The translations under genes and the position numbers were made by a program. Shown piece by piece: positions 1,732 to 63,600 of a stretch of 64,000 nucleotides of DNA. This DNA comes from Laetmonice hystrix (Eukaryota), in contig OZ249444.1 of assembly GCA_965235115.1 (NCBI GenBank), forward strand, positions 17,670,001 through 17,734,000, in the 5' to 3' direction. The notes below the pieces were generated by a model, which saw only the letters and a list, made by a program, of their open reading frames with translations, was not told the DNA's origin and ran no database searches. Numbering within the stretch: the first letter of the stretch is position 1; each line of letters starts with the position of its first letter.

Positions 1732-1900
1732 ATGTGGAGGCCAATCGTGGACCGCGTTCAGACTGTGGTGGGACAGATGCTGAATGATCTGGAGGAGTTC
1801 GCCACCCAGTTAAAGGATGAATTCATGGAAGGAGACAACATCAGCTGGGAGGACTCAGACGACAGCAGCGAATGGGGCAGTTCCGACATAGACGTATGGG
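1732..1900 (+). CDS. MCF2L: Candidate first coding exon A (MWRPIVDRVQ...SSDIDVW), phase 1
   Basis: In-frame TAA at 1705; ATG with A at -3; coding-like composition; donor GG|GTAAGT at 1901; phase 1 joins G+AC (Asp) at 31155. Confidence 0.75.
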
Positions 1901-4900
1901 GTAAGTGGAGTCCCTCCCTTTAACACTGTTTCCTTCACTCTACCTTTGGTGACGAATTGTATAATTGTGATAGAGTGATAGACCTTCACCCTGCACATAG
2001 CTGTACGCACAAAACAAAGTAGTGGCACTTAAACCCAATGAAAAACCTTCAGGCATTAGTCTAGGCTGCGAACGTGGGTCAGTACGGTACTCGTCTGCTC
2101 TGATGACGGCTCAACAACATCTCTTACTTTCCACCCTCAGTATAGTTGAACCTGATTGCCGACTATAAAGTTATTATTCAAAGGGCAAGGGTCTTAGTCG
2201 TCTTACACCAGCTGCGATTAATGGGTAGAATTCAGAATACCCCTTGGGCAGGGATGAAAGATACCGTCACCAAAATAGGACCATATAAAATTATATAAGT
2301 TCTGTGACTGAGATGTAAACCGGTTCTCGACCATCGACTCAATCACAGTGTTCCATCATCGAGGCCAGGTTATGGTCGGTCCAACATCGCCAACTGGTAC
2401 CACTAATGGAGTTGAAATTATATTAAAGTCTTCTTGGGCCACCGTTTGCGAATAATATCTATAACAACCAGACTGGTTATGTACGGCTTCCGATGGTTTC
2501 GTCGTTAAGGGCTAACAATAATGGATTGTCCTCCCAGCGGTGGTGTCTGCTTGTAATCGCTGTTCTGACATGGGTAAGCTCGATATTAATCACAAGGTTT
2601 TGGCCGGACGCAACAAATTTCCATATACTACTCATCAATGCTGGTTCGCTAACCGTCACCAGGCGGCAGCACCAACCAATGCCTGTGTATCGCATGTGGT
2701 GATGCTTGTCCCGCGCCGTATTATTGCGTGATAGGGAGGCGGGTTTTTTTTCTTTCATTTATAGATTCCTGCATTGTTAGATGCATATTTTTTTTTGTCT
2801 GTGTTCTGACGGTGGGATCATTTTTAGATAAAAATCAGAGCGTTCTGATAAGGGTTGGTAATATTGCAATTACAACGCTGGTGAATAATGCATGCGTCTG
2901 GATTTTACAAACAATGATTTATAAACACTGTACATGTGTTATAACAACCAGCCTAAAGACATTTCCTTTAATTCCCTTAAAAACAATACATTATGATACA
3001 CGTGACGGCTCAAGCCGATAAACAATGAAATATTAAACACTAAATTTAAACATTCCAACAGTCTCCAACCACCTACTCCTACGCACTTGATCCATTTTAC
3101 TCCGACGTACTTGATCCATATACTCTTAGTGCTGATCACACAGACTGCGAAATGTGCATTATTGGCCGATAGTTCTTAGATTGATTGACATAAAGCCCAA
3201 CATCTGCTGCGGCGGGGGCTGACAAAGTCTCCATCGCCTCGGTAAACACATGCGGTTTAAATCTAGCTGTGTTGTCATGCAAATGTCTCTGGTGCTTCCA
3301 GACGCATTGCAAGACTGTCCACAAATTCAATTGTACGGTGGCCATTGTGCAAGTATTTTCGGAATCGTATGCGGAAGCAGGCGCATATGGAGGCTGGCAC
3401 CGTGATAAAACGTTGGATAATGTTGTTGAGATATTCATGTAATCTAGACTTATAGCTTGTGCGTATGAAAATCTGATGCTATTTTATTTTTATTTTTCAA
3501 TAGTTGCAGCGTATCACTGTAATTACCGACAGGACATTTTCAGGAATAGAATGAAAAACAGCATGGCAGGAACATTTGTAGTGATAAATGTGGAGATGGC
3601 GTGTAACCATGGTTGATGAGAAATATCATATGATAGCTTATGTGATATGTCAGGTGAACATGCCGCATACTGTACAGCAGTAACTTTCCTTTGGTTAAGG
3701 TTCGATTATACGGGAGGGGTAACCTCCAATAGGTCTTAACTCCAATATCCTACCGACAGGAGTAGGTACATGTAATTCAGATGGAACAGCCAGCAGGGTA
3801 AGCATGGTCAGTGGACCGGGAAAATAACACAGGGCATTCTTCCGTAATGCTAGCTGTTCCATTGAAATTACCTACTCCTGATAGTGGTCAATAGAATATT
3901 TCTGCCAGGTGTGACGCCAAGGTAAGTGGGATTTCCCCGTCTATACCACGTGTATTCTGGACATATTGCCATTGTACGGTAGTACATCTAATGATAATAA
4001 GAAAGAGGACATCATTTTGTTATTGGTGAAGTCCACGAAGTAATCATTTTGTTATTGGTGAAGTTCACGAAGTAATCATTTTGTTATTGGTGAAGTCCAC
4101 AAAGTAATCATTTTGTTATTGGTGAAGTCCACGAAGTAATCATTTTGTTATTGGTGAAGTCCACGAAGTAAATCTATTGTCCTTTTAGACTATAGGATAA
4201 CCCCATTTAAAAGAGAACGAAAAATTAGGTAAATGCAATGATATAGAACTGGTACTGTACCCTACAGCCTCAGTTTACACGGAGTACTTTACATTCTTTT
4301 GGCGTGAGGGTGGAATGACTTCCTTGGCCTGGATCGAATTTATAACCAATAAACCTAGAATTTAACCTTTATACATGATACTTTTCGTTTCAGAAATTGA
4401 TGGCATAGATCATAGTGTTATCCCAAATAATGACGGAATCATAATTATAGTGTAAGGTGACTACTGACGTTTATATCCCAAAGATGCTTTGATCGTAGAT
4501 ATATAGTAGGACGTATTACTACATAATTATCTATGCTTTGATGGTACAGTGAGTGCATTACGAGGGATGCCATGGTGTATGCTTTGATTTGACACCAGAT
4601 GGCAGTGTGGAGCTAGGAGCTGGAAAGGCCGGGATTTCCGCATGAAGCATCACTGGGCTGTGGTATATATTCAAATGCTTGATTAAAATAATGATGAAAT
4701 AATAACACCATCTTTACCAGCTAATATTCACGAATACATATGAACCGTAATGGTTCCTGAGGGTGTGTATACCGTATAAGTATAGTGACCCTTTTATTTT
4801 ACATTAGAGACCATAACAGGAAAGCAAAGGAATTAGGCCTATTAGGATTGCCACATACCAGGTAGCTTTTTCGATGGGGTTCTTGTATGATAAATTGGCG

Positions 4901-6591
4901 AATAGTACATTTGTGTACTACCAACTTAAAGGGAGCGGCTAGTGACTCTGAGTTCTAAACAGTATAGATGGCAGCTAAGGTCACCATTGGTGTGACCCGC
5001 AGCTCAGACAGACTCTTGTTATTGTCGTACGGTCTGGTAGATTCGCTATGATAACATTCCCATGAAATTTGATGGTAGAAACTAAAATTATATCACAATT
5101 CCTAACCCCAACCCTCACCTTCCTTCCCGTCCCCAGTCTTCAGAACAAAAACCCTTTCCGTACGGATCGCTTGCCCCTCACCCTAACCCCAACCCTCACC
5201 TTCCTTCCCGTCCCCAGTCTTCAGAACAAAAACCCTTTCCGTACGGATCGCTTAACCCTCACCCTAACCCCAAACCTCGCCTCCCTTCCCGTCCCCAGTC
5301 TTCAGAACAAAAACCCTTTCCGTACCGATCGCTTAACCCTCACCCTAACCCCAACCCTCGCCTCCCTTCCCGTCCCCAGTCTTCAGAACAAAAACCCTTT
5401 CCGTACCGATCGCTTAACCCTCACCCTAACCCCAACCCTCACCTTCCTTCCCGTCCCCAGTTTTCAGAACAAAAACCCTTTCCATACCGATCGCTTGCCC
5501 CCTTACCCTAACCCCAACCCTCACCTTCCTTCCCGTCCCCAGTCTCCCTCACCTTCCTTCCCGTCCCCAGTCTCCCGACAAAAACCCTTTCCGTACCGAT
5601 CGCTTGCCCCCTTACCCTAACCCCAACCCTCACCTTCCTTCCCGTCCCCAGTCTCCCTCACCTTCCTTCCCGTCCCCAGTCTCCCGACAAAAACCCTTTC
5701 CGTACCGATCGCTTGCCCCGCACCCTAACCCCAAACCGTACCGATCGCTTGCCCCGCACCCTAACCCCAAACCGTACCGATCGCTTGCCCCGCACCCTAA
5801 CCCCAAACCGTACCGATCGCTTGCCCCGCACCCTAACCCCAAACCGTACCGATCGCTTGCCCCGCACCCTAACCCCAAACCGTACCGATCGCTTGCCCCG
5901 CACCCTAACCCCAAACCGTACCGATCGCTTGCCCCGCACCCTAATCCCAAACTGTACCGATCGCTTGCCCCGCACCCTAATCCCAACCCCAAAATTCGTA
6001 GGAATGTTACATGGAGAAATGGGTATGACATGAGCCCGAGTACTGACCATGATATATGACCAGCTTCATGACAGTGCCGCGCACGGGGACTAGGGGGTCC
6101 GGGGACATGCCCTATACTTGATTTTGGATGAGGGGGAGGGTTACAGACCTCCCCCCCCCTCCCCGCCTCCGCACGGCCCTGCCATGGGACATCATCCAAG
6201 GCATGCCTCTTGGCTGATAGCTCAGCAACCAATAAAGACCTCTACATGTCTAGGCAGATCCTCCCGGATCGTATAGCAGGTAGAGTGTGATCAAATGAAG
6301 GAATTCCCCCGTTCCGCCTCGGCCTGTGGATCAATCTACGAACCCACTGACCAGTGTTGGAGCCCCTGGCACCGCGCGATTACAGGGGACTCGTTGGGAG
6401 TTAGACTCAGCAAGACCATCAGCGGTAGGCAATTGGAAGACGGCCGCCACATATTTTATGATCATTAGTAGTGGAGGGGCAAGGTGGGTGGAGAAACAGT
6501 CGGCAGTCAGGACTGGTGCTCCATAGAGCGAGTGGAGAGCAGCAAGAGAACGCCTACAGCCACAGTGACAGCCACGCTGTCTCTGGATCTC

Positions 6592-6665
<74 letters not shown>

Positions 6666-9600
6666 GGTGATGGTGCTGCTGTTACTGCACACGCGCCAGG
6701 CACACGTCACCATCCAACAGCCCTTTGAATCAGCCGACAGCTTTCACAAACACCAAGATATGGGCCGATATCAGTCCACAGGCAACACCAATCTAGGCTT
6801 GGTCCCCCCGTCTCTGGCCGACTAGCCATCCAACCTGCCCGTATTATACAGACTACAGAGTGGATGATCTGCCGATGTCTGGGACGGACTGAAAGACTAC
6901 AGAGACGAAGCTGTCACTTCTAGGACTTCCATTGGTACATGCCACGCGCTGGCAATCTTACCTGATCTCAGACCAGAGCAAAAGAAAGTCACATATTGCA
7001 CCTCAGCATGGGCGATTTCAGGATATGACAGTCGCTAATTCTGTCGACCAGGAAGCGACAAAGTTGCAGAGACCATATTCAAACATCAAGAAAGGCAAGG
7101 TTTTTTCTCGGTAATCAGGAAACACCGTGACAGCAGCTGGCGTCTAGTTCTGTACCGATTGCCATGTGTGGGTGTTAGTAATGGCTGGCGCCGGGCGGCG
7201 TCATGTAAGATTTATTCTAACATTTAGATCAAGGCAATCAGAAAAAACTGTGTGCGCCAGAACCTGACGAAAGCCGACTTCTGGGAGACGTGTCCTATGG
7301 GCTGCTTGTTGGATTCCCAGGGTACCGAAATCTGTGGGTGGAACGGCAGCGAACCGTAACCATAGCGGGAGACAGAAGTCCGCCTCGAATACTCCCAACT
7401 TCGTCCTCTACCCAAGATATCGGACGCTGTGACCACTATACAGCCATGTGACCGTTACGGAGGGTGTGACAGTTACACGTTAGGTCACTGAGAGCCTGCA
7501 TGGTGACGCAGAAGATGCCGCCGTTTCGTTGGGCGTCAGTTATGGACCTCGGGTTCTGCTTTGGTGAAGTGAAGGGCCTCTTCTGGACGGCCTGCAGGTT
7601 GATGCACTTTGCACCTGCTGTGTGCTTCGGGGTCCAGGATTACCAAGGTAGGTCCCGCCCGGTCTTTGAGGGTGACAGGCTCATGACACCTGACATAAAG
7701 GAAAGACATCTGGACTGTGAGTGTTGGTTTGCAGGTCATGAGAAAGTTAGCATGGGATGTGAAGATCTTGCAGCCTGCATAGTCACACACCCACCTGCAT
7801 GCATACACATGCATGATACACTTACACATAAAGACACAGAAACACATCAATAGGAAAACTCTTAAGACAGCCATGGGACATCTCCCCGCAGATTTGATCC
7901 ATGTAATGATAACATGGAGTAGGCTTCCTCTTTTGATTGCGTTTTCATTCTCATGTCTGTAAACACACATTATTATATCCATAAACACCAGCTTCAAAAT
8001 GCCAATGTTCACATAAACCGCAGAGATATTCACGATAAGGTACGGAGTATCGTCGGAAGATATACACCATATATGGCATCCGAGAAATCGATGTGGCCCA
8101 CCCCCACATGTACCGGCAATGTACTACAATCGACAGCGCACTAGACTTTCCATATTGGAAGATGGAGAGAGTGCCAAGTCCTGCAGGCTTATATATTATG
8201 TGCAATGAATGAACTTATGCAAGCCTTGAATATGGTCTTTCCATAGCTTTCAGATAAACACAGGTGAAAACATATGGGAAAACATATGTGAGTACCTTGA
8301 CTGTTTAAATTTTTAAAATATCAAAAAGAGGGAAAACAAACATAGAACAAATTAAAGCCATTGCCTAATTTCCTGAGTCTGGCAGACCGTATAAACACAG
8401 GCCCATTTTATGCACTCTTCGAAAGAGTCGTTCTTTGCTCTGTTTCAAAATGAGGGGAAGGTATGTTTTTGTTTGGGCCCGGTGAGGGGAAAGAAACAAT
8501 GGAGATAAATGACAGAGGTATTGAGGGTGAAATGGTAACACTCAGGATGAACTCAGGTCAGGCTGACGTCAGATGTCAAGTTTATCTACAGACAGCAGGG
8601 CCGGATCCAGGGGGGGGGGGGGCGTGGGGGCGTACGCCCCCTATTTTTGGCAGAGTAATGATTTTTTGAGACTGGAATTTTACACTTGCCGGGAAAGGGC
8701 TTTGCGCCTTCGGCGCTCGCAATCTTCTCCAGGGGCTACGCCCCCCCCCCTTTCTAAGAATCCTGGATCCTGCCCTGGACAGGTTTACTGACTTCATCCC
8801 GTCTCCTGTCTGCTTTCTTCTAATCATCTTCAAGCGGTTTACCAGATTTTAATCTGTCATCTTATGTAGCTAGAACTTAGGTAGCTAGAACGGCAACATG
8901 ACGTAGTGAAGAACAATGTGGTAGATTACAATCTACGGTAAGACGTCTCCTTGGATATGATCAGTTGAGCTTGATTTGACTGCATGCAGAACCGTCAGAA
9001 CTTGAGCGGCTGCTGCCTCCATTCTTACTCTTCGCTCTGCACGTCCAAGACAACTTCATACGATTCTGACAACGGACCAGTTTCTTATCGTTACAGGACG
9101 GCTTCAACTCGGAAGTTCTTATGTTAGTTTATGCACAGGCAGCCCCAAATATTGTTATGTTCTGGCAGGAGGTAAGGGTTCGCTACATGATACAAGTCTG
9201 AGCTGACAGTCTGCTATCACAATGCAGTTCATGTAGTTGTTGGCCAGGATACAACATTGGTAAGGTACCAGTCTCCGTCAGCAGCCACAAGTACCGGATA
9301 AATATTTGGAGGTTTACATGTCGACTGGCCGTGCAGTCAAGTGGTACTGTGTATAAGGGCCTTATCTAGGACCGTCAACATGATGGCAGGATTCATGATA
9401 ACGGGAACCGGGTATTTTTCATCATCCACCTAGTACTTCAATCTCACAGGCGTATGCCTTCACAGCCTGACCTGAGGTCTCTAGGTACCAACGGGACTTA
9501 CTCGATATAAGAGGAAGGTCTCCCCACTAAAAAAAGTTAATTAACAAAAAAAAAAGAAAATCTTGGCCATGCAGTACACAGAGTATTGAGGAGGGATAGG

Positions 9601-12600
9601 TACAAGGTGTTGGCAAAGTTACATGAAAGTTTCTGACATTTGCAGCGAGTAACAGTTCGTTAACAGGTCATTGTTTGAGACCTATAGTTTAGTATAGCTG
9701 TATCAGTTTCAATATCAGTAACACGATCACCAGACCGAAATTAAGCACTATTAGTAGGTCAGATTTAACCTAAGTATAAAGGTTTGATATTCCGTCCTTA
9801 TACTATAGAACTTCGTCTCACGGACAGTTGAATGACGAGGGGTAAAGCCCCCATCCGGGTTGGACTGGGAGGGGTGACATAGTGCACCCCATTTTCAGGG
9901 CGTGGTGTTAGGCTGAATGAAGAGACCCCAGTGCTGGAGCCATCAGTAGATTTGAAGCAGAGCCAGATTGTGTCCAACATTTGAAAGCTGTTCTATGGTA
10001 GAGCGCTGGCACCGTCACAAGTCAAGGTTGAAGGATGACGCACCCCCCCCCCCCCCACACACACACCAATGTATCCTCTTCTGACCATTAATCAATGTAC
10101 ACATGTATATTGTATATTTGACAGAAAGGAGCGGATTATTTTCCGTAAGTGACTTCCTCTACATATAATAAATATTATCCAAGTCAAATCTACAGGGAAT
10201 GTATAGGGTAAAAAGTCCCAGCTGTCCTTTAACGCTGTTACAAATTTATTGGTTGTGTGTGGGTGGAGGTGGGGGCGTTAGGCGCAATAACTCCTCTCTC
10301 TTTCTGTTGCAGACAAAGGCTCCCCATTGTGGACTCTGTACATATCAAATACTATGGGGGATACACACGCTTTCCTGCGGTATTATAATTGAAATGCGAC
10401 AAGGTAAACTAAAGGGCACACTTAAAAGCCCTCCTTTAAGAAATTAAGTGTAATTATTTTGTGTTTAATGGGTTAGGCAAACCTTGAGGGAAATGTTTGT
10501 CTCATTTAGCAGTGGGTACAGAAGTTAGTGACTGCCTGAACACTTCATGTACCAGCTGGGAGCATAATTCCCGGCCCACAAACTACCAGAGGCCCGGCGC
10601 TTGGTACATTATGGTACTAATTATCGCGCATGAGAAGACTTTTGTTAGCCTCCAGGTTAGATCACACTAACACGTGACAGGTCAGTCGGGGTCAAACTGA
10701 TGGGAGTTGCTCCAGGTGTTCCTATGTGAGGACTAGTAATCGGGTCATCGGTCCCAACGATCCAGCCTTCATTATAGAGTGACCTGGAATTCCCACGGTC
10801 AGCATACCTGCGTGGTGTAGTTCGGGAGATCATGAATGGCGGAAGGATACGGACTACTTCTGATACATGATATGGCACGTAGTATGTTTTGGTTTCCCAT
10901 CATTTCACCACACCTTGAAACTCACAAACTAAAGTGGTCATGCATTCACTATCCAGGCAGCGAGGTGGATTTTCACAGCTAACCATCACAGTCATTATCC
11001 GTGCAATTTAACCGTCGATGCCAATCATCTTCGAAGGTCGTCTTTCTAACCCCCCCACCCCCCACCACCCCCCACCCCCACCACCCCACCACCCCCCCCA
11101 CCCAGTGAATTTGAAATGCTGAATTGAAGCTGTGCCGGAACAGAAACCATTTGCCGTATTACTAGAGTACAAGATGGTACCTACCCCCGAGAAGTACCGT
11201 ACCATACACCCGACCCTATATAAAGGCCAGCCTTGAACTATATGAGGCTTGCTACAATACATGTATAGTCTATCCTACCCCTCAGGTATCCGTACGGCCG
11301 TCAGCAACGCAGCGTTGCAGGTGTAAGGGCTCAGGTAAAACTTGGCACTGCTGGAGAGGGGAATTTTATCAATGATATCCGCCAAACTCATTATTTATTC
11401 AGTTTACTTTCAAGGCAAAATGATATTATGTATTTGGAGGAATTCGCTTCCAGTTAGGATTAAAGTAGGTAAGAGCTTTCAAAATCATAGCAGATTCAAA
11501 TGATGTGTTGTTTCGGTGGGATAAACTTGGCAACAATGGAGGGGGAGGGACTGGCAATTAGCAAGATATGCTGAAGTCATGAAATACATGGGCATAAAGC
11601 AAAATATTATATTGATCCGATAGGAGTAAGAGAGTACAACCAGCAGATCCATCTGAGAGTAGGCCTACTGATGCGACACACATGAAAAATCCTACCGAGA
11701 TATTTTCTTCTTATGTAGATTGAACCTTCTCTGCAGTGGATCATTTCCTCTCCCAAAGGTCAGTCGGATATATAGGTTAGCGAGTTATGACAACTCATGG
11801 CTGTGAGGACGACAAAAACAGATAATGATTGTGCATTTAACGTTCAGCCAAATTTGTAATTGGGATGCTTACGCAGGGAAGAATTGGCCATATTATTGCA
11901 TGGTATTACAGAATGTTAGCGGAAATAAAGCCATAACATCTAACACCAGTTTTGAAGAAGAAAAAATGAGAAGGGGAACTAGGTGGAACTAAAATGATCC
12001 ACATCTTGTACCGGGCAAGTATTCCAGACGATTAAACACAGCAGGTCTTACGGATTGTCTGCTAGAATAGAACTATAACAGACATTTATATTACATTGCA
12101 GTCAACGCTAACATTTTGATCTCCTGTCATCATTTACTGGGATTATGGAATTCAGCTAGGTAAAGATGGGACACTGCAACAGATAGCCAGAACAGGGTCA
12201 AGATTTTATTCGGTCGGTCAGTGTTTCTGCTGTTTTTGTGATGTATGATTCGGGTGCCCTTTGAGCCCACAGAGGGCACCCAGCAGGTGGGTCGCGACGT
12301 GATGGGTTGAGCGGGGCTGATGGTTGAGAAGATGTCCGCCAGGTGGACTCCAGTAAACAGTAGCCGTGGAGGAGTGGCGTGTTTATGATTACAGGAGGAC
12401 GCCCGGTGCCACCACTTGACCTCTTCCCGCTGGCTATTTGTTCACCTGTACACACCGTCAACACGACCATAGATCTGGGGGCAAAGGGGCCAGAAATTAC
12501 GAGCTGTGGGGAATCTGAGCAACCTCGAGTTATTAGCCCAAGGACCATAGTCTTTAAGTCGACCAGCTAGTTCCCACATAGATTACAAGCGATCCGGAGA

Positions 12601-15600
12601 CAGATACAATCATTACATTCTATGTTGTGTATAAAAAGGGAAAGGCAAATGCATTAATCAGTCATTGAGATGAGATTTAGAGATGTTTTTCTCAGTAGTG
12701 TGACTGGCTTGTTTCACGCATATTTTACGGTAGACGATGCATGTTTAACGTACTGTAGCAGATGATTGGAAGAACAATAACGTGCATGACCATTCAAATA
12801 ATTACAACTGTCAAATTTCCTAACAAATAACCCATCAGTATACAACTTTGTTTCATTTATTCAGTTTCACATGATTCATAAAACCGGTGAAAAGACATAA
12901 AACCGGTGAAAAGACGAAATCGAATTTTCATTCGTGAGGCGGGGGGGGGGGGGGACTATTTATGGACCATTATAACCTCATAATAATAATTATAATCAAG
13001 TTATCAAATTTAACGTCCTTTAAAACATAACGTCCGCATCAATAAAGTTGAGTGCATGAAATGGCGATCTGGAGCGTTACTTGAGAGCTGCTGCTGGGAT
13101 GTTTTCCACAGAGGGTTCTGTTTTTATTATATTTTATTCTCACGCAAACGCTGGCGTGTTCATGCATTCATTGGAATATATTCATTTAATTAGATAATGT
13201 TGGGGGAAAGAGAAATTGATTTAAAGCCATTTAAAATTTGCAATTGAATCCTTGTGGCCTCGGATGTGCGACCTGTCGCCATGCATTTACCTGGGAATCT
13301 AAATATACACAAGCCGCGTCCAATGAGAGCGGCCGACCGGCCGACTGTGACGGGCAGGCCGAGGTGGGCCGGGCACTTGGATGGAAGACGTTGGGATCCA
13401 TTCACATAATACCGGGATCGATATAAACAAGTGGACATCTCCGTCACTCTGACATTGTGAGACATAGACACAAGGATACTGTGGATAGTGAGGTGGTAGG
13501 GCGTGTTAGACCAACCAGCTGGACCGTTACCTCGATCTGACGTATGTTGGATGATAAACTGGTAGGTCCAGTTTTTTATCGACCCTACTTTAGAGTTGGG
13601 AGTGGGCTGTGTGAGTACACACATGTGGCTGTGTTTCACATGGCTCCATCCGTTTACTATATGACGTGTTGGAGGTAGGGGGAATGACGTTCTGCATGGT
13701 GGCCTACTCATACAGATGCTGTTAGAAGAGACCTTGACTGAGTTATGGATTCTGGTACAATGTGTGTCACTGTACACACGATTCTGTGGGTAGATTGTTT
13801 TCTATCATGCTGGTTTTACAATGTTGATATCATTTGAAACATGAGATGATGCGGGAGGTATGGCACTATGGTGTAGGCCTACACAGCATCCCCAAGATAC
13901 TGCCTATACATGCATGACATGTACCGCACGAATAATTTCGGATGATGCGGAAGGTATACCATCCTGGGTAGCAAAATTCCACTGATTAATTGTAACTATG
14001 CTAAAAGGCTTTTATGCTGAAGTTTAGTGTATAGAGGTTATGCAGTGACGTCATTTGGAGGGAAACAGCATGGTCATGTTTATGTTTACGTCCATGGGCA
14101 TTGGCGGAGACTGGTCACGGTTCATTGGATTCTATTCTCCACAGCCTATTTATAAATTGTTGTACGAGCCTGACGATAAGGTTCAGTTGGTAAATGACCC
14201 CGGTGGATTTTGTTTTGTTTTGTTTTTTGTCATAGTCATGCATTTCTCTATAGGACAACCTCTCCACTTTTTAAATCCTAAATTCACCTACATTAGGTGC
14301 AGCTGTAATAGGCTTGTGACCTCTATTCGATAAGGATATCCTTGTTATATGAAACCTGGTTACCTGAACAGGTAAGAACATGATTGGCAATCATTAGCAA
14401 GTCGTTTCCGTTCACCTGTATGATAAGCTCAGTGGGACAATACAAGTCTAATGTCAGTCAGACCTGAGGCCTGAGAACGTTAGACCGGGTATGTCATAAC
14501 CAGAGGGGCCTCACTCACATCCATTACCTTTTTTAGAAAGTCTGTTTTGTTGTATTTGCATGTTAGTTTTTGGTGTGTTTTTCTTTTCCAGGAAAAGTTG
14601 TTATCAAAACTTTTATGTGGGCGTGCTTCGTTATAATTTTGTTTTGTTCATTGAGTTTGTGTGCTAGCTTGCATCTTGTGTTGTAGAAAATTCTTCTTTG
14701 TTTTTTTCTTTATCAGAGCATGGCACAGTAGCGCCACCTATCCATTAGCATACACCTCACATGTCACCATCCAGAGGACTGGTACGACGTGCGAGTTGAG
14801 CTTGAATGGATGATGAAGGACTGTATATGCACAACCTGATCATAGCCCTGGAGATATTGTGAGGAACCGATAAAGATGGCAAAGAGGAGGTTCTCAGACG
14901 CTCCCTATAAACTCATAGTGAATTATCGTGAGTGACATGTTTCATATCAGTCGGGTTAAGGTATGCATCCTCGGACAGAGAAACTGCTACGCTTCTGTGT
15001 ATTTTAATAATAACAGTACTTTTTGTTGCTAGCTTCTCAAGACTTCATTTATATGACAAAACTTGTGTTCTCTATTGATCTGGTTGACACGGGTACTGTT
15101 CTCACACTTTAATTGTAAACGGATTACTTTGAGCAGAACTATATTACAGGCGTTTACAATGGTGTGTACAATGGCTAATTACAGTGGATCTTTTGAAGGC
15201 GATCAAGGGTTAGGGTAACTTTCCGACTTCTAAGGTGGACATTATGACCTTCAAGTCATTCAGGTGAACAAATTACGCAAGAGTAGATTGTGGATTAAAT
15301 GATTGTAGGCTAGTAGCGGATAAGTCCGTGTTGTGGTTGGCCCGTTCGGTCGTCGTCGTGGTACACAAGACTCAGTCGGGAAAACAGCTTAACCTTTCGT
15401 TGGCGGAATGAGGGGTTAAAAATATACAAATGGGAACGAAACCTATGATTAAATAGGCTCCACTCTACTGATACAATGCATATACCTTCATACACTCTTG
15501 TTTGAAAAAAAAACGGGTTTAAATTGTCTGCACTGAAACATTATGGCGAGAGTTTATTATTATAATGCTCTTACTGGCTCGTTATAATTATTCATGACAC

Positions 15601-51600: not shown

Positions 51601-54600
51601 ACAGTGGGCACCGATCTGATAACTTACCATACCGGCCACTGGTATAGATAGGAAACCACGGGAAGGCACCTCATCCTCGAAACACAAGTACAACTGACAA
51701 AAATATCTGTTTGTCCAGCTTAACCGTACCATTTTCAACTTGCTTCCTAATGTTCTTTTTCTGTTATTCTCCTACCGTGTATGATGTAGAAAAAAGTACC
51801 GAAAAAAATCAACTGCTGATATTGGAAGTGTAGTATAACCAGTTATCGAACAAGATGACCCGTGGGTTGTGTTGAGGCCCTCAGGTTGAGTACATACCAA
51901 TACCCTAAAATTATACCGTCCCAGCGCCCAGAGGTTCACCCACCTCCACCCAGGTGGCACTGCCTGTCTGTTCGATACCCAGCTGGAGTGACACGGCCCC
52001 CTGGGTGAAGGAAGCGCCACCTACCGGGCCAATGATCAACTAATGAACCATTGGACACCCTATGAATCCTCGGAATGACCGTGCCAACAGATAAAACTGG
52101 TAATTTGCGGTGATTTATTTTTTACTAGATATCCTTGCTTTGATAGTGACAAAAAGATCTAGCAGCACCCATTTTTCAAACCGCAGTGTATGGAAAACGT
52201 GAAAAAAAAGTCTGCTGTTGAAGTTCGTTATCTGTAGGATTGAACGGTTTAGGTCAGAAGTAGTTCAGTGAGACGACGAGCGCAACGTCATGCAAAACTT
52301 TATGACAAAAATTAGTATCGCATATACCGGCATAACCAGTAATTAGTGGTTCAATAACCGAATCATTTAGAGTCTGTTAATGCATCCAGTCAAAATAGGA
52401 TTCCGGCCATCATCATATTTAGAATCAAAGAAAGATTATGATTGTTATATAAGCGTTCATTTTACTGATGTATTTTGAAAGTTAGCTGTTAATTTGAGCA
52501 ATTGGTAGAGACTTAGATCTATAACAATATGTATATTGAACCGACATAGTCTCCTAGACGTCTACTCCGACACATTCTCCTAGACGTGGTCAAGAGGAAC
52601 GGGATGGAGCAGACTGAACGCTCTGCCACCCCCACCCCTCCCTCCCCGCCGGCCCACCATGTGGCTGTAGTCAACCTGATGGGCCCTGATGGGGTGGATA
52701 CCATGTGGTACAGGGGGTTGCTGCCCCTCCCAGCTCAACCAATCCCAGCCCCGCCGTCCAACCTTTAAACAGTGGACCCGGGCTCGGGTGGTGTAGTAAC
52801 ATCGTCTCCAGACCTGCTGCTGGTCGTGTTACAGAGAGATTCGTATACCGCCTCACCGCTCGTCACCGTCACCGTGACTGTTAGCGTTACTCTCGGCGTG
52901 ACGGTCACCGTCACGTCCGTCATGGGAGCCGTCAAGGTTAAACTCCAGCCACTGGACTCATGACATGTACACGTGGTGGTTTGTCCTTGAGAAGACGTGT
53001 CGTCATGAGAACCAGAGCCTTACGATATGGTTCACCTTCTAAAGCCTGGAGCTTACTTGGTGGACGGATGGCTCCCTCGTACCGTCACCACACTACACGA
53101 ACGACTACAGACAACATTGTACTTGGCATGGACGTGTTGCCGTAGCAACCTCATCGTATGATCTACAATATGAGGCGTGCACGATTTCTTAAAATATCTG
53201 AAAAAACGGAGGTTGTTTTCAAGGAGAGCTTCTCGGCGGAGATAAGAGAGACCTATGGGTTAGTGGAAATACGAGTGCAAAAAGTCGCCAAACGATATAT
53301 CTCACCTCAGTCAAATTTTCAAGTGAAAACATCTGTGAAGCTTTTAGGGAAAAAACAGCAAACCTACACCAGGATAATTGCCTCGGGCAAGCTTGAAGTA
53401 GGGAACGGAGGTAGCAAGTACATAGGTTGAGGTGAAAAAAAGGAATGCCTTCGGTGAAGTAGGAGTTTCAATAACCATGGCGCCTCAGAAGTATCAGCCA
53501 GGGTGTTCAAGGTGGAAGGCTTCTATCTGACGTTGACGTGATCTTTGCCATGATCTTTTACCGGTCAAAATGATCTTCACGGATAATCAGTACACACGTG
53601 TCGGCAAAGAACTAAACATTTTACTAGAATACGTGCCGCGATAGAAACGGCAGGTACTGGTGCTGACCTGGGGAAACTGCCAACGTACAATGTGTAGTAC
53701 TGTCATACAAAACTAATCGATGATGCCTTGAACCGATGTTTGAAAGTCGATAAACTATGAGATCTGAGAGACGTGTTTGAAGTTCTGGTGGTATCCAAAC
53801 GTATCCGACTGATGACAGTTTGGCACGCCGTGGTATCTGGTGTCGGAGATTTAACAGAGAAGGAAGCCGAAGTGGAGAGAAGTAATCCAGATGTTAAACG
53901 CTATAAAGATCCTTTATTATGCCATACATAAGATGTAGAGGTTGTCCAGACAGGGTGTACCTGAGGAGACAACCAGATCAATACGGTGCGGTAATTAGAG
54001 CGGTGAGGTGGGGTGGATGTATTATCGTGATGTGAGGGCGCGTCTGGCCGACTGTATCCAGCAGGTGGCGCGGCGGTCGGAACAAGTCTTCCAGTGGCTG
54101 GCAGTCGGAGCGTGGCTGGCTGTGGCCGTCGTCTTCTACAGGATGATGGCCGACGTGGCCGAGCTGCTCAGCATCGCTCTCCATAAGATCACCGGCCTCG
54201 TTCTGGCCGTCGTCATGGGGACACTGCTGTGGAAGGTCTTCCGGTATGTTATGATTGGGTGGGGCAGGATACCTGTGTGTATGCAGACAGGTAACTTACC
54301 CACCTTGTCTCACCTGAGCAATAATTTTGCTATCACGAGTTGGCTACGGAATAGGTCTTGCTCTGTTTCATCTACAAGTTCAGTCAGACCTTTGTTATTT
54401 AGCCACTTTCCTTTTTAGCAATTTCCTCGTTTTCATCCAGGAAAAATGCCAAGTCTCAGGCGTGGCAAACTATTTTAAAGATATAGCCTATGCTGGGGAG
54501 GGACGGGAAATACCAAATACTCACTTTAGGAATAAGACCTAGACGGAATTTTCTCGGGGGTACCAGTACCCCCCCCCCCCCGTCCCTCTAGGTTCCGACC

Positions 54601-57600
54601 CACCTTCAGTACAGACAAGAAGATGAAAAGAACCAGAGTTGCGAGATGAAACCCTAGAATGCTATCCGCATATTCTGTATTGACACTGATAGAGTAATCT
54701 TGAGGGAGTGGATTGGTAATTAAAGGTGAACCACCTGTGAGACAGGGCCCCCATGTGCACATAACCTGTTGAGAGCAAGTAAACAAGTAGAACCTGGTTA
54801 GTCGGTAAGTGGATTTCCCTGCTCACCCATAAAGCCGACAAACTGGGTCGTCCAGGTAATGGCTACTGTTGTTGTGGCTTGTAATTACCTACACCTGGTA
54901 CCGCCTCGGTTACCATCAACATCTTTCTGACGGGCTTTGTGGCTTGTGTCAACCGAGGTACAATGTACATGGCGTTTTATATTTAACTCTTCCCACTTAT
55001 GCTTAAATACAAAACTGCATGACAAAGGGTATCGATAACTGTGGTATTAATATCAATTTTTGGTCTCGCACAGACTTACACCGGGTCAATAGTATGGAGC
55101 GGGCGTTAGGTACGGTATATAAGAGCCTTCAATCATCATCATCATCATCATCATGAGCAGCAGCAGCAGCAGCAGCAGCAAAAATCACCTTAAAAATACA
55201 CAATTCAGTGGTGGCTCAATGCTTTGGGACTGGGAGAATACTTACTGATTTACAAAATGGTGGATCCTAGAGGGATCAAGCCAAAAATTACATTTAAACA
55301 AATGAAGATTCGGCTCCAGACTCCCCAGTTTTCCCTATACCCCTCCCGATCGCTCCCTGGTTTTTTGTAGTATTCTATCTCTAAACCATTGAAATTTCCA
55401 ATTTGGTAAAGTGTACTCCATCATCAGTGTGAATTTTCCATGTTATTTTGGTTGACATTTGTAGAAGATGTATTGTATAAAAAGCAGTGTGCCGCTGTGG
55501 CCTGCCCGGTGTGAGTGTAGAAGGTGTGCCGCTGTGGCCTGCCCGGTGTGAGTGTAGAAGGTGTGCCGCTGTGGCCTGCCCGGTGTGAGTGTAGAAGGTG
55601 TGCCGCTGTGGCCTGCCCGGTGTGAGTGTAGAAGGTGTGAAGAGTGCGGTATGCGGTAACCCGGTGGATTCCGTTACAGTAGATAGAACAAAGGGAGGTG
55701 GTGGTGGGGGGAGGGGTTGGGGTCGTGTTTGTTTGGGTGTGGTGTGAGGAGGGGTGCCAGAGGTAGCCGGGAAGTGTTTGGGTAGATGAAGTGGCAGGAG
55801 GCCGAGATGATACAGCTGACACGGTCCGCCATACCAAACATTCCCTGCTCGCCGTCACCCAGACACTACAAGGGCGCCCATTGAGGTTCTCACTCTGATC
55901 TTTTACTGATTTGGGATAAAAAAAAAAAGGGGGGGGGGAGTGGTGGTAGCCAAACTTGTATTCATACCACCTTGAAATAATAGAGCTGTTCTCCTTTCTA
56001 GTAAAATGCCAATGCTGTGTGCGTTACCTTTCGTTATGCCAGTATTGAAATGTTGGCAGATGCGGATGATCGATGAGCCAGTCCCTCTCCCAATAAAATG
56101 AGGGATTCGGTCATTTAGTTTAACAAAGGCTGCACCCCTTAGAATATCGGAATGTCTGGTGCCAGGCAAGTTTTAGCGATTGGCACTGGTTTAGCAGAAG
56201 TAGAAACTGGCAGTTGAGGTGGTGAGCTCGTTGTGGGCGCTGAAGTTTTGAGACTTTGTTAGCAGCTGGTGTCTGTGAGCCTGAACATGGGAGACCTCGG
56301 TGTGACGGCCACGGAATCCAGGAATTAGTGCCCTCTGGCGGCAGTCTGTCGCCACCACCGAAGACGGTCTCATAGAAACACTAGCGCCCCCACCGGTCGA
56401 TCAATAAGTAACAATCTCAGTGAGCTCCACCAGGCAAAAATGTGATGTGGAAATCTGAAACTCTATCGGTTGGAAACCAATTACGTGCAAGAGTCGTGAC
56501 TGCACTTGGTGTCAGGAGCTGGGGCCCAGATAGGGTGGAGCTATAGTGAAAGTTTCACTATTTTTAGGTTGCCCTAATGTCCACTGGAGATTGTCAAATA
56601 GCTGAAGGTCCCAATTGAGCAATGGACACCGTGGAGAGACCTTTTGTCAATAAAATAAGATCAAGTGCCGGTTGACGGGGAAATTGCCAGTCTGGGTTTT
56701 CATCAGAGTAGGTGTATAGCACAGGTCAAGTGGAACGGTTGGGACAGGACGGTGTTGACCAGGACCGGTGGGTAGTGGTCCCTACAATTACTGCCTCATT
56801 GGTATGCTAATTGTGGACCATTGTCGTGAGAGGGACAGAGACAGCCCTGAGGTGAAGTGCCACGCTAAACGTTAATGGACTGGGGGTGTGTGATTGGGGT
56901 GAACGGTTTCACCCCACACGTAGGTTTAGGGTGACAACAGATCGGCAGACCACCCTCATTCTAGTTCTAGTGTGAGGGTTGAATCTTTTGGGAGCAAGGA
57001 ACGTGGATGGTATCTTACCCTGAAAACTGGAGGTTGGTAGAGTTCGCAACGAGAGATGAGCAGCAAAGAGTTGTCTTGGAGTTTGGTGTGCAGCTGAATC
57101 ATACTGTGAAGCTGAAAGAGTCTGCCTCCATTTCAAGTGCAGTTCTGAGATGGTGACGAGTTGCTTGCATGTCACTCAGGATCCTAACCTTGTATCTCTG
57201 CAGGTTACTGGTCCAGCTAGAAGAAACAGAACGTAATTTTGACGACTTCTGGAATCAACATGAGCAAAGACTTCAGCAGTGCCTGCAGTTACGAAAGTTT
57301 GAGGAAGAATTCAAACAGGTCAGTTTCTATGTGATCATCTTAACCAGATCTAGATTTAAAAATAACCTTTCCGTTCATCTCCCGTGTTACTTTCTGCAGG
57401 TGACATCTTGTATATATTGATGCACTGAATATGACGGAATTCTTGTCTGACCCGTATGAAAACATATTGAATACAACGTATTATGGGTCCATCCCGCATT
57501 AGGAATAAACGTAGAAAAAAGCGACATCTCTTGCTGGAGTTTGTGACGTGGTATGTTTTGGTCTGTAGGTTCAGTACACAGTAGAGCGACACGAAACGAT

Positions 57601-60600
57601 GCTGGAGACGATGTCGGACACGGGCGATTCTATATCACGCGTAGAGCACCTGCTGAAGGAACTGGCAGACTTTGAGGATGAGTCAAAGGTCAGTCTTTGT
57701 CATGTTAGAAGGTCAAAGATCAACAGTGCTGGTATTAGAACAGGTGCAGGAAACGATCTAGGTCTAGCAGGCCTGGTATTATAATGGTAGCTTGGATCGA
57801 AAGTCAGCGCTGAGGTTTTGGTATCAATCAGTGTTACGTCCTGACATTCTGGAAATCGCATAAATGAAAATCTGAGGTTCTCTGCATGAGTCAAACTAAG
57901 GTTCTACAGTCCACAACTGTTTTACATCGTAATGCGACCTTTCTTTCCTTGTTTTGAAATGAACCAAATGATTTGTTAAACGATCCCTGGTATTGATGTT
58001 GCCAGGAGGACATAATGAGAGCGGAGCAGTTAAAGAGTACAGGAGACCAACTGATTGAGGACGACCATTATGCTGTAGACTGCATTCGTCCTAAGTGTAT
58101 TGAGTTACAACGTATGTGTGCCCAGTATAAGGAGATGGTTAGGGCACGGTATGAGGTCCTGAACCGGGCGCGCGACCTCCACGACAGGATAGATAAGGTA
58201 TACCATATATAGAGTTACTATCCAACCTCGACCCACTGTGGTTAACCAGGGAACATTGCACTGGAAGGAGGTCTTCTCAGACACAGGCAATTTCTGATAC
58301 ATAGGAAATGTTAACAAAGAATCAATACAGGGTTCATACACATAAGGAATGATGTTATCATGGAATCTTTGAAAGATGTTAAAATGTACCTTTGGAAGCA
58401 AACATTATCTGGTGGTAGGACACAAATTCAGAAAGAGCAAGCCCTATTTCTGTTAGCGTACATATATTATAATATTGGTTGTGAAATGTTTTCTGACAGA
58501 TGTTGACGGTAATTTGTCTGTTTGATATTCTCAGGCCAACAAGTGGTGTACACGTGGGGTGGACCTGCTGGCCAGCCAGCCCATAGACAAATGTAACACA
58601 CCAGGTGGCGCTGAAGACGCGCTGGGCGAGCTGCAGGTCTTCCTCAACACGGCCGACGATCTCAAACTCAACAACCCCAAGGAGTTCAGGACCCTGTTTG
58701 AGACGATGATCACACCAGATACAAAGGTCAGAACCCACGCCAGTATAAACAAAAATATCGTACCATTTGAGATTTACCTCAATACTGATTGTAGGGTTCA
58801 AGCTAGGGACTAGCCACCAAGTGAAAATTTTACGAAAATGAACTCTTCAAATTTGTTTTTAAACACACTTGTTTTCCTTGTCATCCTTTTAATTTCATGC
58901 CTTTAATAATAATTGTGTATTTACAGAACGCAGTCCAAGAGGTTCTGAAGAGGATCGAAGATGTCCAGAGTATGTGTGACAAGCGGCGTGAGACCCTCAA
59001 AAAGCAGGTTGCCAAGGCCAACCGTCCGGTACAGCCGGTCACCCCAGAGCCAGCCACACCCATCCACAAAGTTCCAAGTTCTCCCTCCATAGACTTTGAT
59101 AAGAAACGGAAAAAGTCCACTAACGGCATGCGGCGAGGCAGTAGTTCAAATAAGGTGAGAACCAAAATCAACTATCCAATACTTCATTTTCACACTCTCC
59201 AACTTTTTATTTTGAGTAAAGAAAGTCTTTTATGACTGTTTTGAACGCCTCTTAAAGTTTAAATTGCGTCCGGTTTTACGATCCAGAGGGACGTGTATGT
59301 CTCAGTTTTCACTCTTCCAATGTCTGTCCATTTTCCTTCTCTTCAACTATAGCCAAGATCTCTCATTCATAGGTATTTGACTCTAGCTACAATCAGCACT
59401 GGTAATTCCTGTAATTACTAGCAGTTCTCCCCTCTGTCTAGTCTGCTGTATGATTTCAAGATGTTGACCTGTAGGTGTGGTAGAAGTGGTTAATGTTGAG
59501 GTGCTCTTACTGTTACAGTTAGGGGCTCGTATTGAGGTGGTACGTGACGGGAGTCTCAGTGACAGTAGTGGGTCTGTCGACATTGACACCACAGATTGTC
59601 CCAGCGGGAAAAAATCCGATCCCACCAGGGAACTGGATACCCTACACGCCAAACGAGGGTAAGTGATGTTCTGCAGCATTTTCAAATATATTTTCATGTG
59701 TGGTGCTTTTGGTGGAGTTCGTATGTAAAGATCAATGTGTCGATACCTACAAGAGATCCCTCACTTACTGGTTTATCTGGCAAGGCCACTGTCTCTATTT
59801 TACGCTGAAACTACACAAAGAAATTAAACATTAAATCGTGTTTTTTCTTTAACCTCAGGGATGAAACCAGTCAACGGTGGGTTAGAGGGCATGTGACTGT
59901 GTCTGTTGCAGTTATAACGTATTAATTAGGCCTCCATCAGTTAACTATAAGGCATGGTAGCTGTTTTACCCCATCTATCCAATTTATAATTAAGGTAGTC
60001 TGCATTAAGTCACACCTTTTGCAATGTTATGTAAGATGTCATCTTCAGGAGTTATGTTTGCCTCAAACAATACGATAGAGGTTTCTTTTTAGGGCAATAT
60101 TTAGAAAGGTACATTTAAGCGTAAATGCATCCCTTAGAGGTCTTGCATTTACAAGTTCGTCAAAGACTTTACAAAAGTTCAGTAAAGACTGCAGAATCTT
60201 CACCCATCCATACTACCGTAGTTCATGAGGTGACCCTTGTGTTGATATGTAGGACTTTGGTGTCGAATGGAAGCTTCATTTTGCGGGGTCCCAGTTCCAC
60301 GTTATAAATCTCACTAAATAGTTGCAATGTGCATTATTTATATTTTGACATTTTTATTTGCTCTTAGTCTTAACATTATGCTGTTAGCTTGTGAAATGAA
60401 TTATTATTCTTAGGTTTTATTACTGAATGAGGTTTTCGGTTTGTGTGAGTCCAAACGATGCTTGCCGGATTGCTTGACACATGCCTAACCATGAATAGCT
60501 TATGTACCATTTATATGGTCGAGCATTGTGAGCATTTTATTGGCCCTGTATAAATGTGTCTGTCCGTGTTAAATTTCTAGCCTCCTTTTGTGTGAGATAA

Positions 60601-63600
60601 AGTAAAAACACTTGACGAAAGAACATACAGCTTGCAATAATCAGGAGAATATCAGAATCCAGGTTTGAACTTGTTTGGTAAAGCCGTCTTTGTACATCCA
60701 CAAACCGGCTTTATCAACCAAGCAAAAGTGGAAGTCGGAAAAAAACAGCCTCTTGAGTTGTTTTATGAAACTTGTCTAGGTTAAAAGTATCCACCAATGA
60801 ACACATCACAAGTCAGAAGAAAAACATTCGGTGTGCACGTTAGGATTAATCTTGTTTCAAAATGTATAAGTGTCGTCCGAGAATTTGACACCGATGCATT
60901 GTTGTATTTTGCACTGCCTGTTTTGTTTGTACCGTAGCCAGAACCGGCATGTGTTGAATGTCTGTTGTTTGTCGCAGCACGTCCACCCTGAGAAAGATAA
61001 AGGCCAAACTGAGCTCAATTCGTGAGTCTGAGTCACGAGAGAAAAAACAAGGGTGAGGAGGAGTCTGCAGCCAGTAGTAAACGATGATCTGATTGGCTGA
61101 TTCTGTTTATAATCGGGGCTTGGAGTGGACATGTATTAACCATTGTGCATATTAACAGCAACAGCTTGCCGCAGCGCCCCCTATGTATCGTGTCATAAAT
61201 TACCACCTCTCAAAAAACGCTAGACGCCTAACCCAACACCTTCCTGCCCCTGCCAGTCGCTTTGATAACAATAACAAAATTTATGTTGGCAATTTGCGCC
61301 GGAAAAAAATAAATATGGGAAAGTATGAAAATATTGGGGTAGTAGGTGAAAGACAAAGTTTTAAATTACGAGAGAGGAATATTTGAAAATAATGGGTGTT
61401 GAGAGAAAGATGGTTGGCTTTGGTTGAACTATAGGTACATGGGTACCTTCCAGTGTTGGAGAGGTGCATGTTTGCTTGTCGCCGAGGTCAGGTGGTTCCG
61501 AGAAGTTTTACCGTAGTCGGACGTCTTGGTCCAATAATGCTGACAGGCACTCACTCAGAGTAGACGTGGTGGATTTCAGCTGAAATCTGGACAGAACCTA
61601 ACCTCAACTGCCAGTCTCTACCCAGACATTCTTAAATAAAGAATAAACTCCATGAATAATTCAATTTCTTCTCCCAAGATACGGTCCCTGGCTGTGTTTG
61701 TAAAGTCTGCCTAAGAAGTAAATCTGGCACACAATGGGAGATTCTAGCTTCCTTGCTTGTCATTATAGTTTCAAAGGATGTGTTCGATGAATATTTGCTT
61801 GGATGCTAAATCACACTCGATCGTTTAGGCTTTGAGTTGCATGGCAAATGTCTGCATGAAACTACATGCACATTACGATCCACTCATCAAACATCCATTA
61901 TTTCAGTCTTCCATTCATCACGAATTGAATATCGGATAGTAATTGAGAAATGAGAACTTTTATGATACGTACCGTAGTGACTGGCCAATAATAATTATGT
62001 TTCGCTTCTTTCGTAGCTAATCATTTTAGTTGTATTGGTTGTTTTTGCTGTGTATAGCCTTTCTTTGATAGAATTGTATAGTTTTAAGTTTGGCTCACTT
62101 TTGATATTTTGTTTGGACCTGTTTCAACAATGCACTAGCATGTAGTTTATCAAAAGCTATTCCATGTGTTTGCTGTTTAAACCTTCCGTCCGATAGTTTT
62201 GCGTTTTCAAATGTCCGCGTAGATGCAGTTTTTGGAGCAGTGTTTGGGCGGGAACAGTTTTTGGAGCAGTGTTTGGGCGGGAACAGTTTTTGCACTAGTG
62301 TGTGGGCGGGAACAATTTGTCATAATGTGTGTGTTCCTCTTTCAGACACGTGATGCGAGAATTGATTGACACTGAACGTATCTACGTGTCAGAACTACAG
62401 AGTATCCTGGATGGATACGCCAGCAAGTTTGAGCAAGAGAATGCTGAGGAAATACTACCAGAGCAATTGGTGGGAAAACGACATGTGCTCTTTGGTAACA
62501 TGGATGAAATCTACAACTTCCACTCCACGTAAGTCGCAGCTGAAGGGAGCTCCAAAAGTTGTGGCAGTTATTTACATGAGACATTTAGATGACTTCCTCT
62601 GATCACAGCTTTTTATAGCATACCCCTGGTATATGATTCCAGTCTGTACCTCTTTAACAAATATTTTGAAAATGCATGTTTCAAGGCCAGTTGGGCGAGG
62701 GTCATGTTTCAGGTCATCAGTTTGCTGATTTTTCACTATTTCTTCAATTTTTCAGAATATTCCTAAAGGACCTGGAGAACTGCAGAAACACGCCAGCCAT
62801 GGTTGGCAAGTGCTTCATAGCCAGAGTAAGTTTGTGGAACATTAGATAATGATTGAATATCAATGGTCTTTCGCAATTGTAACTGCCTCTCAATTTCAAT
62901 TTAAAACTATTATGAAATATGTACTTGTAGTTTATAATATTTGCAGCTAGCAGATGATGGCTTAGTCTGCCTTTACTCAGGACTCCCCCTCACTGTCTAC
63001 TCTAGCATGTCTGAAATTCAAACAAGTGACATTGAATGATATTGTTTGTAGAGAGAGGAGTTCCAGATCTATAGTACCTACTGCCAAAACAAACAGAAGT
63101 CGGAGGCTCTGAGGCGAGAGGTTGGTGACGGAAACCCGTTCTTTAAGGTGAGATATTATCAACAACTTCCATGTGGTACATTTATTTATCGAATTAAACC
63201 GTTTCCAGTGCATTAAATTTTGATCTAAATTTGACATAAAAGAAAATACGTAGGAGTCCCTTTCAAGAAGATTGAATTTTAATTGCAGGAGTGCCAAAAA
63301 CGGTTGAACCATCGCTTGCCGCTTGGTGCTTACCTCCTTAAACCAGTCCAGAGAATCACCAAGTACCAACTACTACTTAAGGTTTGTACTACACAAGGGT
63401 TGTATATCTCTCCTGGTATTCACTTACAAAATATATAACGATCCATTCTGAGAGCGAGATAATAAGCCAGTTCGACTCAGATAAAAAAAAGTGGGGGGGG
63501 GGGGAAACCAAACCAGTTCCGTCTCTCATAGCATCATAACATGACGTCATACTCTATCTTGAGCTGGTGATGAGCAGAGATATTTGTGACTGAAGACGTG

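Follow-up and report, generated by a model that had tools for sequence, protein, structure and literature searches.

Related front-peptide exons and candidate internal first exons in a DBS/MCF2L-type RhoGEF gene of Laetmonice hystrix

The stretch of DNA analysed here, called the window, comprises 64,000 nucleotides of the Laetmonice hystrix assembly GCA_965235115.1 (contig OZ249444.1, positions 17,670,001 to 17,734,000, forward strand), and positions are counted from its first letter. It holds most of a DBS/MCF2L-type RhoGEF gene on the plus strand, with Sec14, spectrin and DH regions. An original prediction, made from the letters alone, had proposed for this gene a set of at least eight alternative first exons (candidates A, B, C, D, E, G, H and I), entering the core at four points. 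We find that A is conserved in a relative, that a related exon, Z, lies upstream of the window, and that E and H stand out by their codon use. With moderate confidence, we favour a DBS/MCF2L-type gene in which several promoters put different front peptides before a common exon at 31155, where the Sec14 part starts.

We identify the locus as a DBS/MCF2L-type RhoGEF gene of lophotrochozoan (annelid-like) character. Comparison with full-length DBS relatives by tblastn gave 17 colinear coding blocks on the plus strand, from 31.1 kb to the window end. A search with exon 31157-31351 returned relatives of at most 69% identity, among which matches named DBS came from Owenia fusiformis, Capitella teleta, Lingula, Batillaria, Sinanodonta, Homarus and Procambarus, the nearest named relatives being the DBS proteins of annelids, molluscs and crustaceans. 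In Pfam, the Owenia and Sinanodonta proteins carry CRAL_TRIO_2, Spectrin, the DBS-like Spectrin_5, RhoGEF, PH and SH3. Core exons E2 to E12 are colinear with residues 23-551 of Owenia DBS (P0008), where Pfam has CRAL_TRIO_2, Spectrin and Spectrin_5; a single 65-residue exon taken alone gave no Pfam match. Exon 62347-62526 matches Pfam RhoGEF (E = 8.4e-10), and its best solved structures are the DBS DH-PH entries 1lb1, 1kzg and 1kz7 (E ~7e-14). The gene continues past the window end (64000), with open reading frames (ORFs) for PH-like and SH3-like peptides in the next 2 kb (codon scores, as defined below, of 9.7-13.1 bits). Exon coordinates (Table 1) come from a frame-consistent splice model, in which, together with tblastn, the four acceptors used by the original prediction (31155, 41702, 57204 and 62346) are true exon starts of the DBS-like gene. 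None of the eight candidates is needed to complete the core protein; if real, they are therefore alternative exons.

All eight candidate strings are present as described, each being ATG-led, stop-free, followed by GT and in frame with its named core exon. The bare phase-matched pattern of an ATG running to a GT is at chance level, so that a set of at least eight first exons is not supported by it. When the introns were scanned for such ORFs of at least 52 nt and with a donor-matrix score of at least 5, 44 were phase-matched, against 31 and 29 in the wrong phases and 36-47 on the opposite strand. ORFs with a strong donor showed a slight excess in the matched phase (17 versus 9-13).

Codon use was more discriminating. 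We scored ORFs by codon log-odds, comparing the codon use of the core exons with intron trinucleotides, and leave-one-out scores of the true exons were positive throughout. About 187 control ORFs in the window reached at most 7.5 bits, H's own ORF with another donor being set aside. H, A and E exceeded all of these controls and all non-exonic ORFs in two flanks of 100 kb, while G, B, D, I and C scored within the control noise. The flank scan, run on both strands and in all three phases, returned eight ORFs of at least 7.5 bits, seven of them in evident real exons (the PH-like and SH3-like exons that follow in this gene, exons of the neighbouring downstream gene, and exon Z). Since flank ORFs at this level are nearly all exonic, the codon score is specific. 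Codon-like ATG-led ORFs with a fair donor in the introns were all of splice-compatible phase, except H's ORF with another donor.

Candidate A encodes a peptide that is helical and then acidic and rich in Ser, Asp and Trp, ending at the donor GGG/GTAAGT. Its sole database relative is P0151, an 83-residue ORF on a 195-kb contig of ENA assembly ERZ26222911, with 84% identity across 56 of 56 residues. This similarity starts about three codons before the ATG and stops two codons past the donor (GK, encoded by the donor itself); beyond, the frames differ at nearly every position. The same contig bears the Sec14 exon as ORF P0152, with 94% identity. The codon signal of A is specific to its frame, other frames being negative, and no upstream ATG was found within 120 nt. 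The best outside match to A is the N-terminus of Batillaria DBS (p ~0.002 by shuffling), and no paralogue of A was found in its own genome (a 627-Mb, 35-contig assembly). We conclude that A is very probably a real coding exon of this gene and infer that it has its own promoter. A reading of A as an internal exon after Z was rejected: the only AG just before its ATG is out of register, and both alternative frames contain stops.

Exon Z precedes the window by 16.8 kb and the Sec14 exon by 48 kb, and ends at the donor CAG/GTAACT. It bears the motif IExxIExFVxxFK (IELEIENFVASFKQ), which recurs in both Owenia (L031, ATG 15222; IEHQIEQFVVNFKR) and Capitella (L032, ATG 5018; VEAQIEMFLDQFKY), in each case close to the beginning of an ATG-led phase-1 ORF that precedes the Sec14 exon. 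The annotated start exon differs from this Z-like ORF in both species, that of Owenia lying 5 kb upstream of it. Two further DBS proteins have the motif at their N-terminus, namely the Batillaria model (P0010), in which it runs into the Sec14 exon, and the Procambarus isoform X7 (RefSeq; QIERQIDSFLETFKR); the lobster (Homarus) DBS isoform X1 has only four residues in place of that front. Shuffle tests gave z = 5.5 for the Owenia against the Batillaria front, z = 3.2-3.3 for Z against Owenia and against Batillaria, and z = 2.8 for Z against the crayfish. A loose form of the motif occurs only four times in the six frames of 164 kb, and two of these occurrences are Z and A, the latter holding a diverged copy (LNDLEEFATQLKD). 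We hold with high confidence that Z is a real coding exon of this gene. It is probably the ancestral first exon, and by the shared motif A looks like a diverged duplicate of Z. Z and A, related to each other and of the same phase, bring the front-peptide exons of the locus to at least two. No description of the motif was found in PMC9823006 or PMC4653905, and this conserved protostome front motif may be new.

Candidate H has the strongest codon score of the intronic ORFs, on a par with the best core exons. Its GC content by codon position is 0.67/0.37/0.80, and its ratio of observed to expected CpG (CpG o/e) is 0.96. Along its open frame of 133 codons the score turns from +27.5 to -24 bits exactly at the donor at 54243, and there is no further coding-like segment between H and E8. 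The peptide contains two hydrophobic windows (Kyte-Doolittle 1.6-1.9, at about residues 23-45 and 47-75). H is single-copy in the genome. A protein-atlas search returned nothing for A or H, with an equally low recognition score for both; as the score is low even for the conserved A, it is uninformative for H. Judging by its codon use, H has slightly better than an even chance of being a real coding exon of this gene. We think it unlikely that it is a lineage-specific first exon whose two helices form a membrane hairpin, making a constitutively membrane-tethered, integral-membrane Dbl-family RhoGEF. Were this true, the product would hold part of the spectrin-like region and DH-PH-SH3 on the cytosolic face, without the autoinhibitory Sec14. 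A TATA-like hexamer 115 nt upstream of H does not meet TATAWAWR and was set aside, as were similarities of H to E8 and to the Sec14 exon, neither of which was significant.

The signal of candidate E is also frame-specific, the other five frames scoring at most 1.3 bits, and it rises to 15.8 bits when 40504-40605 is taken. From its codon use we give E slightly less than an even chance of being a real coding exon. Its similarity to exon E8 was not significant. Another frame holds, 110 nt before E, a coding-like open segment on the plus strand at 40290-40421 (14.6 bits) that has no starting ATG. The E5-E6 interval is about 0.2 kb in Owenia. In Capitella the position of E falls in a 7.7-kb intron that contains the start of a separate annotated gene model, which does not resemble E in sequence. 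DBS is annotated there as two models, one with Sec14 alone and one with spectrin, DH, PH and SH3 parts; the latter has its start exon at L032:16823-17053, and this division may be an annotation artefact.

In the reading we favour, Z and A would be front-peptide first exons with their own promoters, spliced to 31155. E would be a lineage-specific first exon whose internal promoter yields an isoform without Sec14, and H would likewise start, from an internal promoter, an isoform without Sec14 and without E6 and E7. As described for Kalirin and MCF2L, the role of the front peptides would be to adjust localisation and autoinhibition. A, B, C, D and Z are each of phase 1 and read into 31155; of these, only A and Z have independent support. 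The general proposal, a Sec14-spectrin-DH RhoGEF in which two or more coding first exons would lead into the Sec14-start exon, holds with A, which is conserved in a relative, and with Z outside the window.

Several points weigh against this reading. The putative splice from A to 31155 is drawn from strand, phase and the shared contig, and a search for sequencing runs covering the locus returned three DNA-type contig sets from one sample and no RNA run. The donor matrix was a rough textbook one, and the thresholds of the codon test were chosen after the candidates had been seen, which weakens formal p-values. No homologue of H was found among 5.8 billion proteins. The antisense frame of H reaches 26-29 bits, equal to the sense frame. 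In Owenia the E7-E8 interval measures about 1.9 kb and in Capitella 0.7 kb; at best, then, H is confined to this lineage. Among the variants listed for the DNA contigs over 53400-59399, no haplotype difference falls between 53884 and 54359, and one run holds only 0.85 of H's words. E, for its part, is short (24 codons), abounds in the charged residues that are also common in the training exons, and is preceded by four ATGs in the 95 nt upstream.

In a rival account, only the 5' cluster of Z and A is real, internal promoters do not exist, and H and E are accidents of base composition at GC- and CpG-rich places in large introns. It would fit the missing homologues of both candidates and the missing RNA run among the runs found, the antisense score of H, the segment at 40290-40421, which suggests a locally codon-like composition near E, and the lack of room for H in Owenia and Capitella and for E in Owenia. 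Such accidents are, however, rare: over 400 kb of strand length in the flanks, only one ORF of at least 7.5 bits lay outside an evident exon, and the false positives expected at this level in these introns number about 0.05-0.2. H far exceeds that level, and a donor of compatible phase stands exactly where its signal ends. We therefore regard this account as rather unlikely, and prefer several promoters with internal first exons at E and H. With intervals of 0.2-2 kb at the positions of E, G and H in Owenia and of 0.7 kb for G and H in Capitella, these candidates would be lineage-specific at best. At the DBS loci of these two species no match to A, E or H was found.

H might, alternatively, be no part of the RhoGEF gene, but either the last exon of a small minus-strand gene nested here or what is left of an inserted coding sequence. 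A minus-strand open frame of 105 codons at 53981-54295 carries the antisense score of 26-29 bits and is preceded by an acceptor-like tract near 54273, and the GC content at third positions (GC3, 0.80) and the CpG o/e of H are unusual for the gene. That frame, however, has no usable donor, and its codon signal ends 19 codons before its stop; real exons of this gene likewise show an antisense codon signal. In the sense reading, by contrast, the ATG directly follows a stop codon and the donor falls exactly at the end of the codon signal, GC3 exceeds GC1 (GC at first positions) as in most core exons, and a relative of H on either strand is absent from the genome. Overall this origin appears decidedly improbable, and we keep H as a candidate exon of the RhoGEF gene.

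For the remaining candidates, conservation gave no support: B, C, D, E, G and I had no significant match at the Owenia and Capitella loci, so that among the eight the expectation of conservation in relatives was borne out for A and neither for these six nor for H. The original prediction had itself cautioned that the short candidates B, D and G could be chance; D and G lie within noise, and B is ambiguous. Most likely, B, C, D and G are ORFs that arose by chance. B is quite unlikely to be a real coding exon: its antisense frame (16.2 bits) scores above the sense frame, a donor at 7716 is also of phase 1, and no Pfam family was matched and no other homologue found. For C, with five upstream ATGs within 120 nt, we consider a real exon very improbable. 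The peptide of C is similar to the final part of the Sec14 exon (SDxxYKxxVxY; shuffling z = 6), but the DNA shows no such similarity, and the likeness may have arisen by chance or mark a very old remnant of an exon. D has the best donor of the candidates (CAG/GTAGGT) and an upstream ATG 17 nt before its own; we judge it improbable, and the same holds for G, whose donor GTAACC lacks the G at position +5. A weak Batillaria similarity gave a lead to D as an internal exon after A, which was rejected, no usable acceptor being found upstream of D.

Candidate I is better explained in another way. Its ATG and next six codons are the pyrimidine-rich tract (tgtctgttgtttgtcgcag) of an acceptor whose CAG ends at 60977, and the 75-nt exon that follows, of phase 2 in and out, is in frame between E13 and E14. 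In quality this acceptor equals those of E2 and E13, as does about one in every five to eight YAGs found within these introns. A 2-codon upstream ORF abuts the ATG of I, with an upstream ATG 9 nt before it. Because of the acceptor tract, the absence of a codon signal and the tiny upstream ORF, the cassette reading is the more economical; we see I as a possible, if somewhat doubtful, cassette exon of the linker that precedes the DH domain, and as a poor prospect for a first exon. The graded series through four entry points was thus not borne out, since internal entry has codon statistics behind it for E and H only and I fits a cassette. That all eight, or at least seven, are functional first exons giving such a series is hardly credible: the frames, the GT donors and the small strong-donor excess speak for it, but C, D, G and I cannot be told from the control ORFs by codon score, the start of I overlaps an acceptor, the donor of G is poor, and D and I have upstream ATGs close before their starts.

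Table 1. Features of the RhoGEF locus (window positions unless stated; codon scores in bits)
Feature	Position	Strand	Description	Basis	Codon score
Exon Z	G000:C10:17653158-17653593, outside window	+	ATG-led ORF, 145 codons, phase 1	codon score and motif	25
Candidate A	1732-1900	+	candidate coding first exon, 56 codons + 1 nt, phase 1	conservation and codon score	16.4
Candidate B	7500-7647	+	ambiguous ORF in GC-rich patch beside (CAG)n run	codon score in noise	5.4; 10.9 with donor at 7716
Candidate C	14876-14927	+	17-codon ORF	negative codon score	-2.2
Candidate D	19598-19652	+	18-codon ORF	strong donor, codon score in noise	4.2
E2-E5	31155-31353, 31784-31874, 32311-32424, 32702-32818	+	Sec14/CRAL_TRIO part	tblastn (Owenia, Sinanodonta, Homarus DBS) and splice model	
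Candidate E	40531-40602	+	possible first exon of Sec14-less isoform, phase 0 into E6	codon score	12.4
E6, E7	41702-41845, 42855-43003	+	first spectrin-like part	tblastn and splice model	
Candidate G	48939-49042	+	ORF with weak donor	codon score at edge of control maximum	7.3
Candidate H	54017-54243	+	two hydrophobic helices, phase 2 into E8	codon score	27.5
E8-E13	57204-57318, 57575-57688, 58006-58197, 58535-58726, 58927-59154, 59519-59658	+	spectrin-like repeats and linker	tblastn and splice model	
Candidate I	60958-61052; as 75-nt cassette 60978-61052	+	first-exon candidate or possible cassette	acceptor at 60977/60978	1.3
E14-E19	62346-62528, 62756-62825, 63052-63147, 63289-63381, 63632-63757, 63913 onwards	+	DH domain	Pfam and splice model	

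Some further features of the locus were noted. The first Sec14 exon is single here and split by an intron in Owenia (L031:29440-29523 and 30120-30248), Capitella (L032:10363-10446 and 11334-11459) and three metagenome-derived relatives (L008-L010), which reflects either intron loss in this lineage or intron gain in the others. The methionine in YVMGES, in the same exon (E2), is invariant among eight relatives, and it could serve as a start for non-coding first exons, which would be invisible to a scan for ATG and phase. A related transcript (L005, JGI 3300008013) has a stop just 5' of the Sec14 exon and retains a downstream intron; it is compatible with a start at YVMGES, but its 5' part may be intron, and it says nothing firm on a non-coding first exon. 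A search of JGI metagenomes with the Sec14 exon gave five loci, all distant genomic fragments or one transcript, none of which shows a first exon. Between E13 and E14 lies a candidate microexon of 18 nt (59859-59876), with an acceptor of pyrimidine fraction 0.8 and CAG and with a GT donor; it preserves the frame and would put DETSQR ahead of HVMREL.

Tandem or low-complexity repeats occupy 5066-6056, 6557-6700, 39144-39479 and 52769-53019, and include a (CAG)n run. They produce long open frames in several frames and local CpG o/e peaks, neither of which is coding evidence. The CpG o/e peaks near A, E and H are modest and the tandem repeats are partly responsible for them, so we set them aside as support. 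Short interspersed repeats at 3737-3944, 8594-8778 and 14030-14163 have many copies in the genome (81-98% identity), the youngest being the 134-nt unit at 14030-14163 (94-98%), and overlap no candidate exon. Both neighbouring genes lie on the same strand (+). The upstream one, about 32.5 kb before the window, has a Cys-rich exon (CRVYCEQVEKRCPYFLP); the downstream one, 9-14 kb past the window end, has a signal-peptide-like first exon, and its exons, by eye, we take to be trehalase-like.

For annotation, these results place the true 5' end of the gene outside the window, and a model should include at least two front exons, Z and A, with E and H as candidates. The motif IExxIExFVxxFK, present from annelids to crustaceans directly before Sec14, offers a handle on the N-terminal control of localisation or autoinhibition in DBS-type guanine nucleotide exchange factors (GEFs). 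H, if expressed, would be the first membrane-hairpin-anchored Dbl-family GEF known to us, and such an isoform may then be new; to our knowledge, no transmembrane-type front peptide like H has been described for the family. Without expression of H, we would see here no more than an ordinary instance of a known arrangement. Dbl and Dbs are activated by N-terminal truncation, and the shorter Kalirin isoforms delta-Kalirin and Duet arise from internal promoters, a class of truncated products that also takes in the UNC-73 short forms and onco-Dbl-like ones.

The layout itself is not new, alternative front peptides being already known for Kalirin, MCF2L and crustacean DBS. Kalirin has four promoters, whose first exons (Ex1A-D) are spliced to the exon where CRAL_TRIO begins, and its front peptides differ in charge and amphipathicity and alter lipid binding and localisation (PMC9823006). 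Isoforms of MCF2L and TRIO also vary in their front peptide, some of those of MCF2L being predicted to be amphipathic (PMC9823006), and human MCF2L has 21 annotated coding transcripts in Ensembl (PMC4653905). As in KALRN, short coding first exons join a common Sec14-start exon at our locus; unlike there, comparative support is confined to A, in the window, and Z, outside it, and the gene is of the single-GEF DBS type rather than Kalirin/Trio. Mammalian MCF2L/DBS and MCF2/DBL share with it the order of Sec14, spectrin-like and DH parts, with the putative PH and SH3 parts to follow, and the front peptides of MCF2L vary, although no sequence similarity was found between the mammalian front peptides and those described here. 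The DBS proteins of Homarus (X1-X3), Procambarus, Batillaria and Owenia come from other phyla or distant annelids, with a core identity of about 50-60%. Crayfish X7 and Batillaria DBS carry the Z motif at the N-terminus, joined to the Sec14 exon at the same point.

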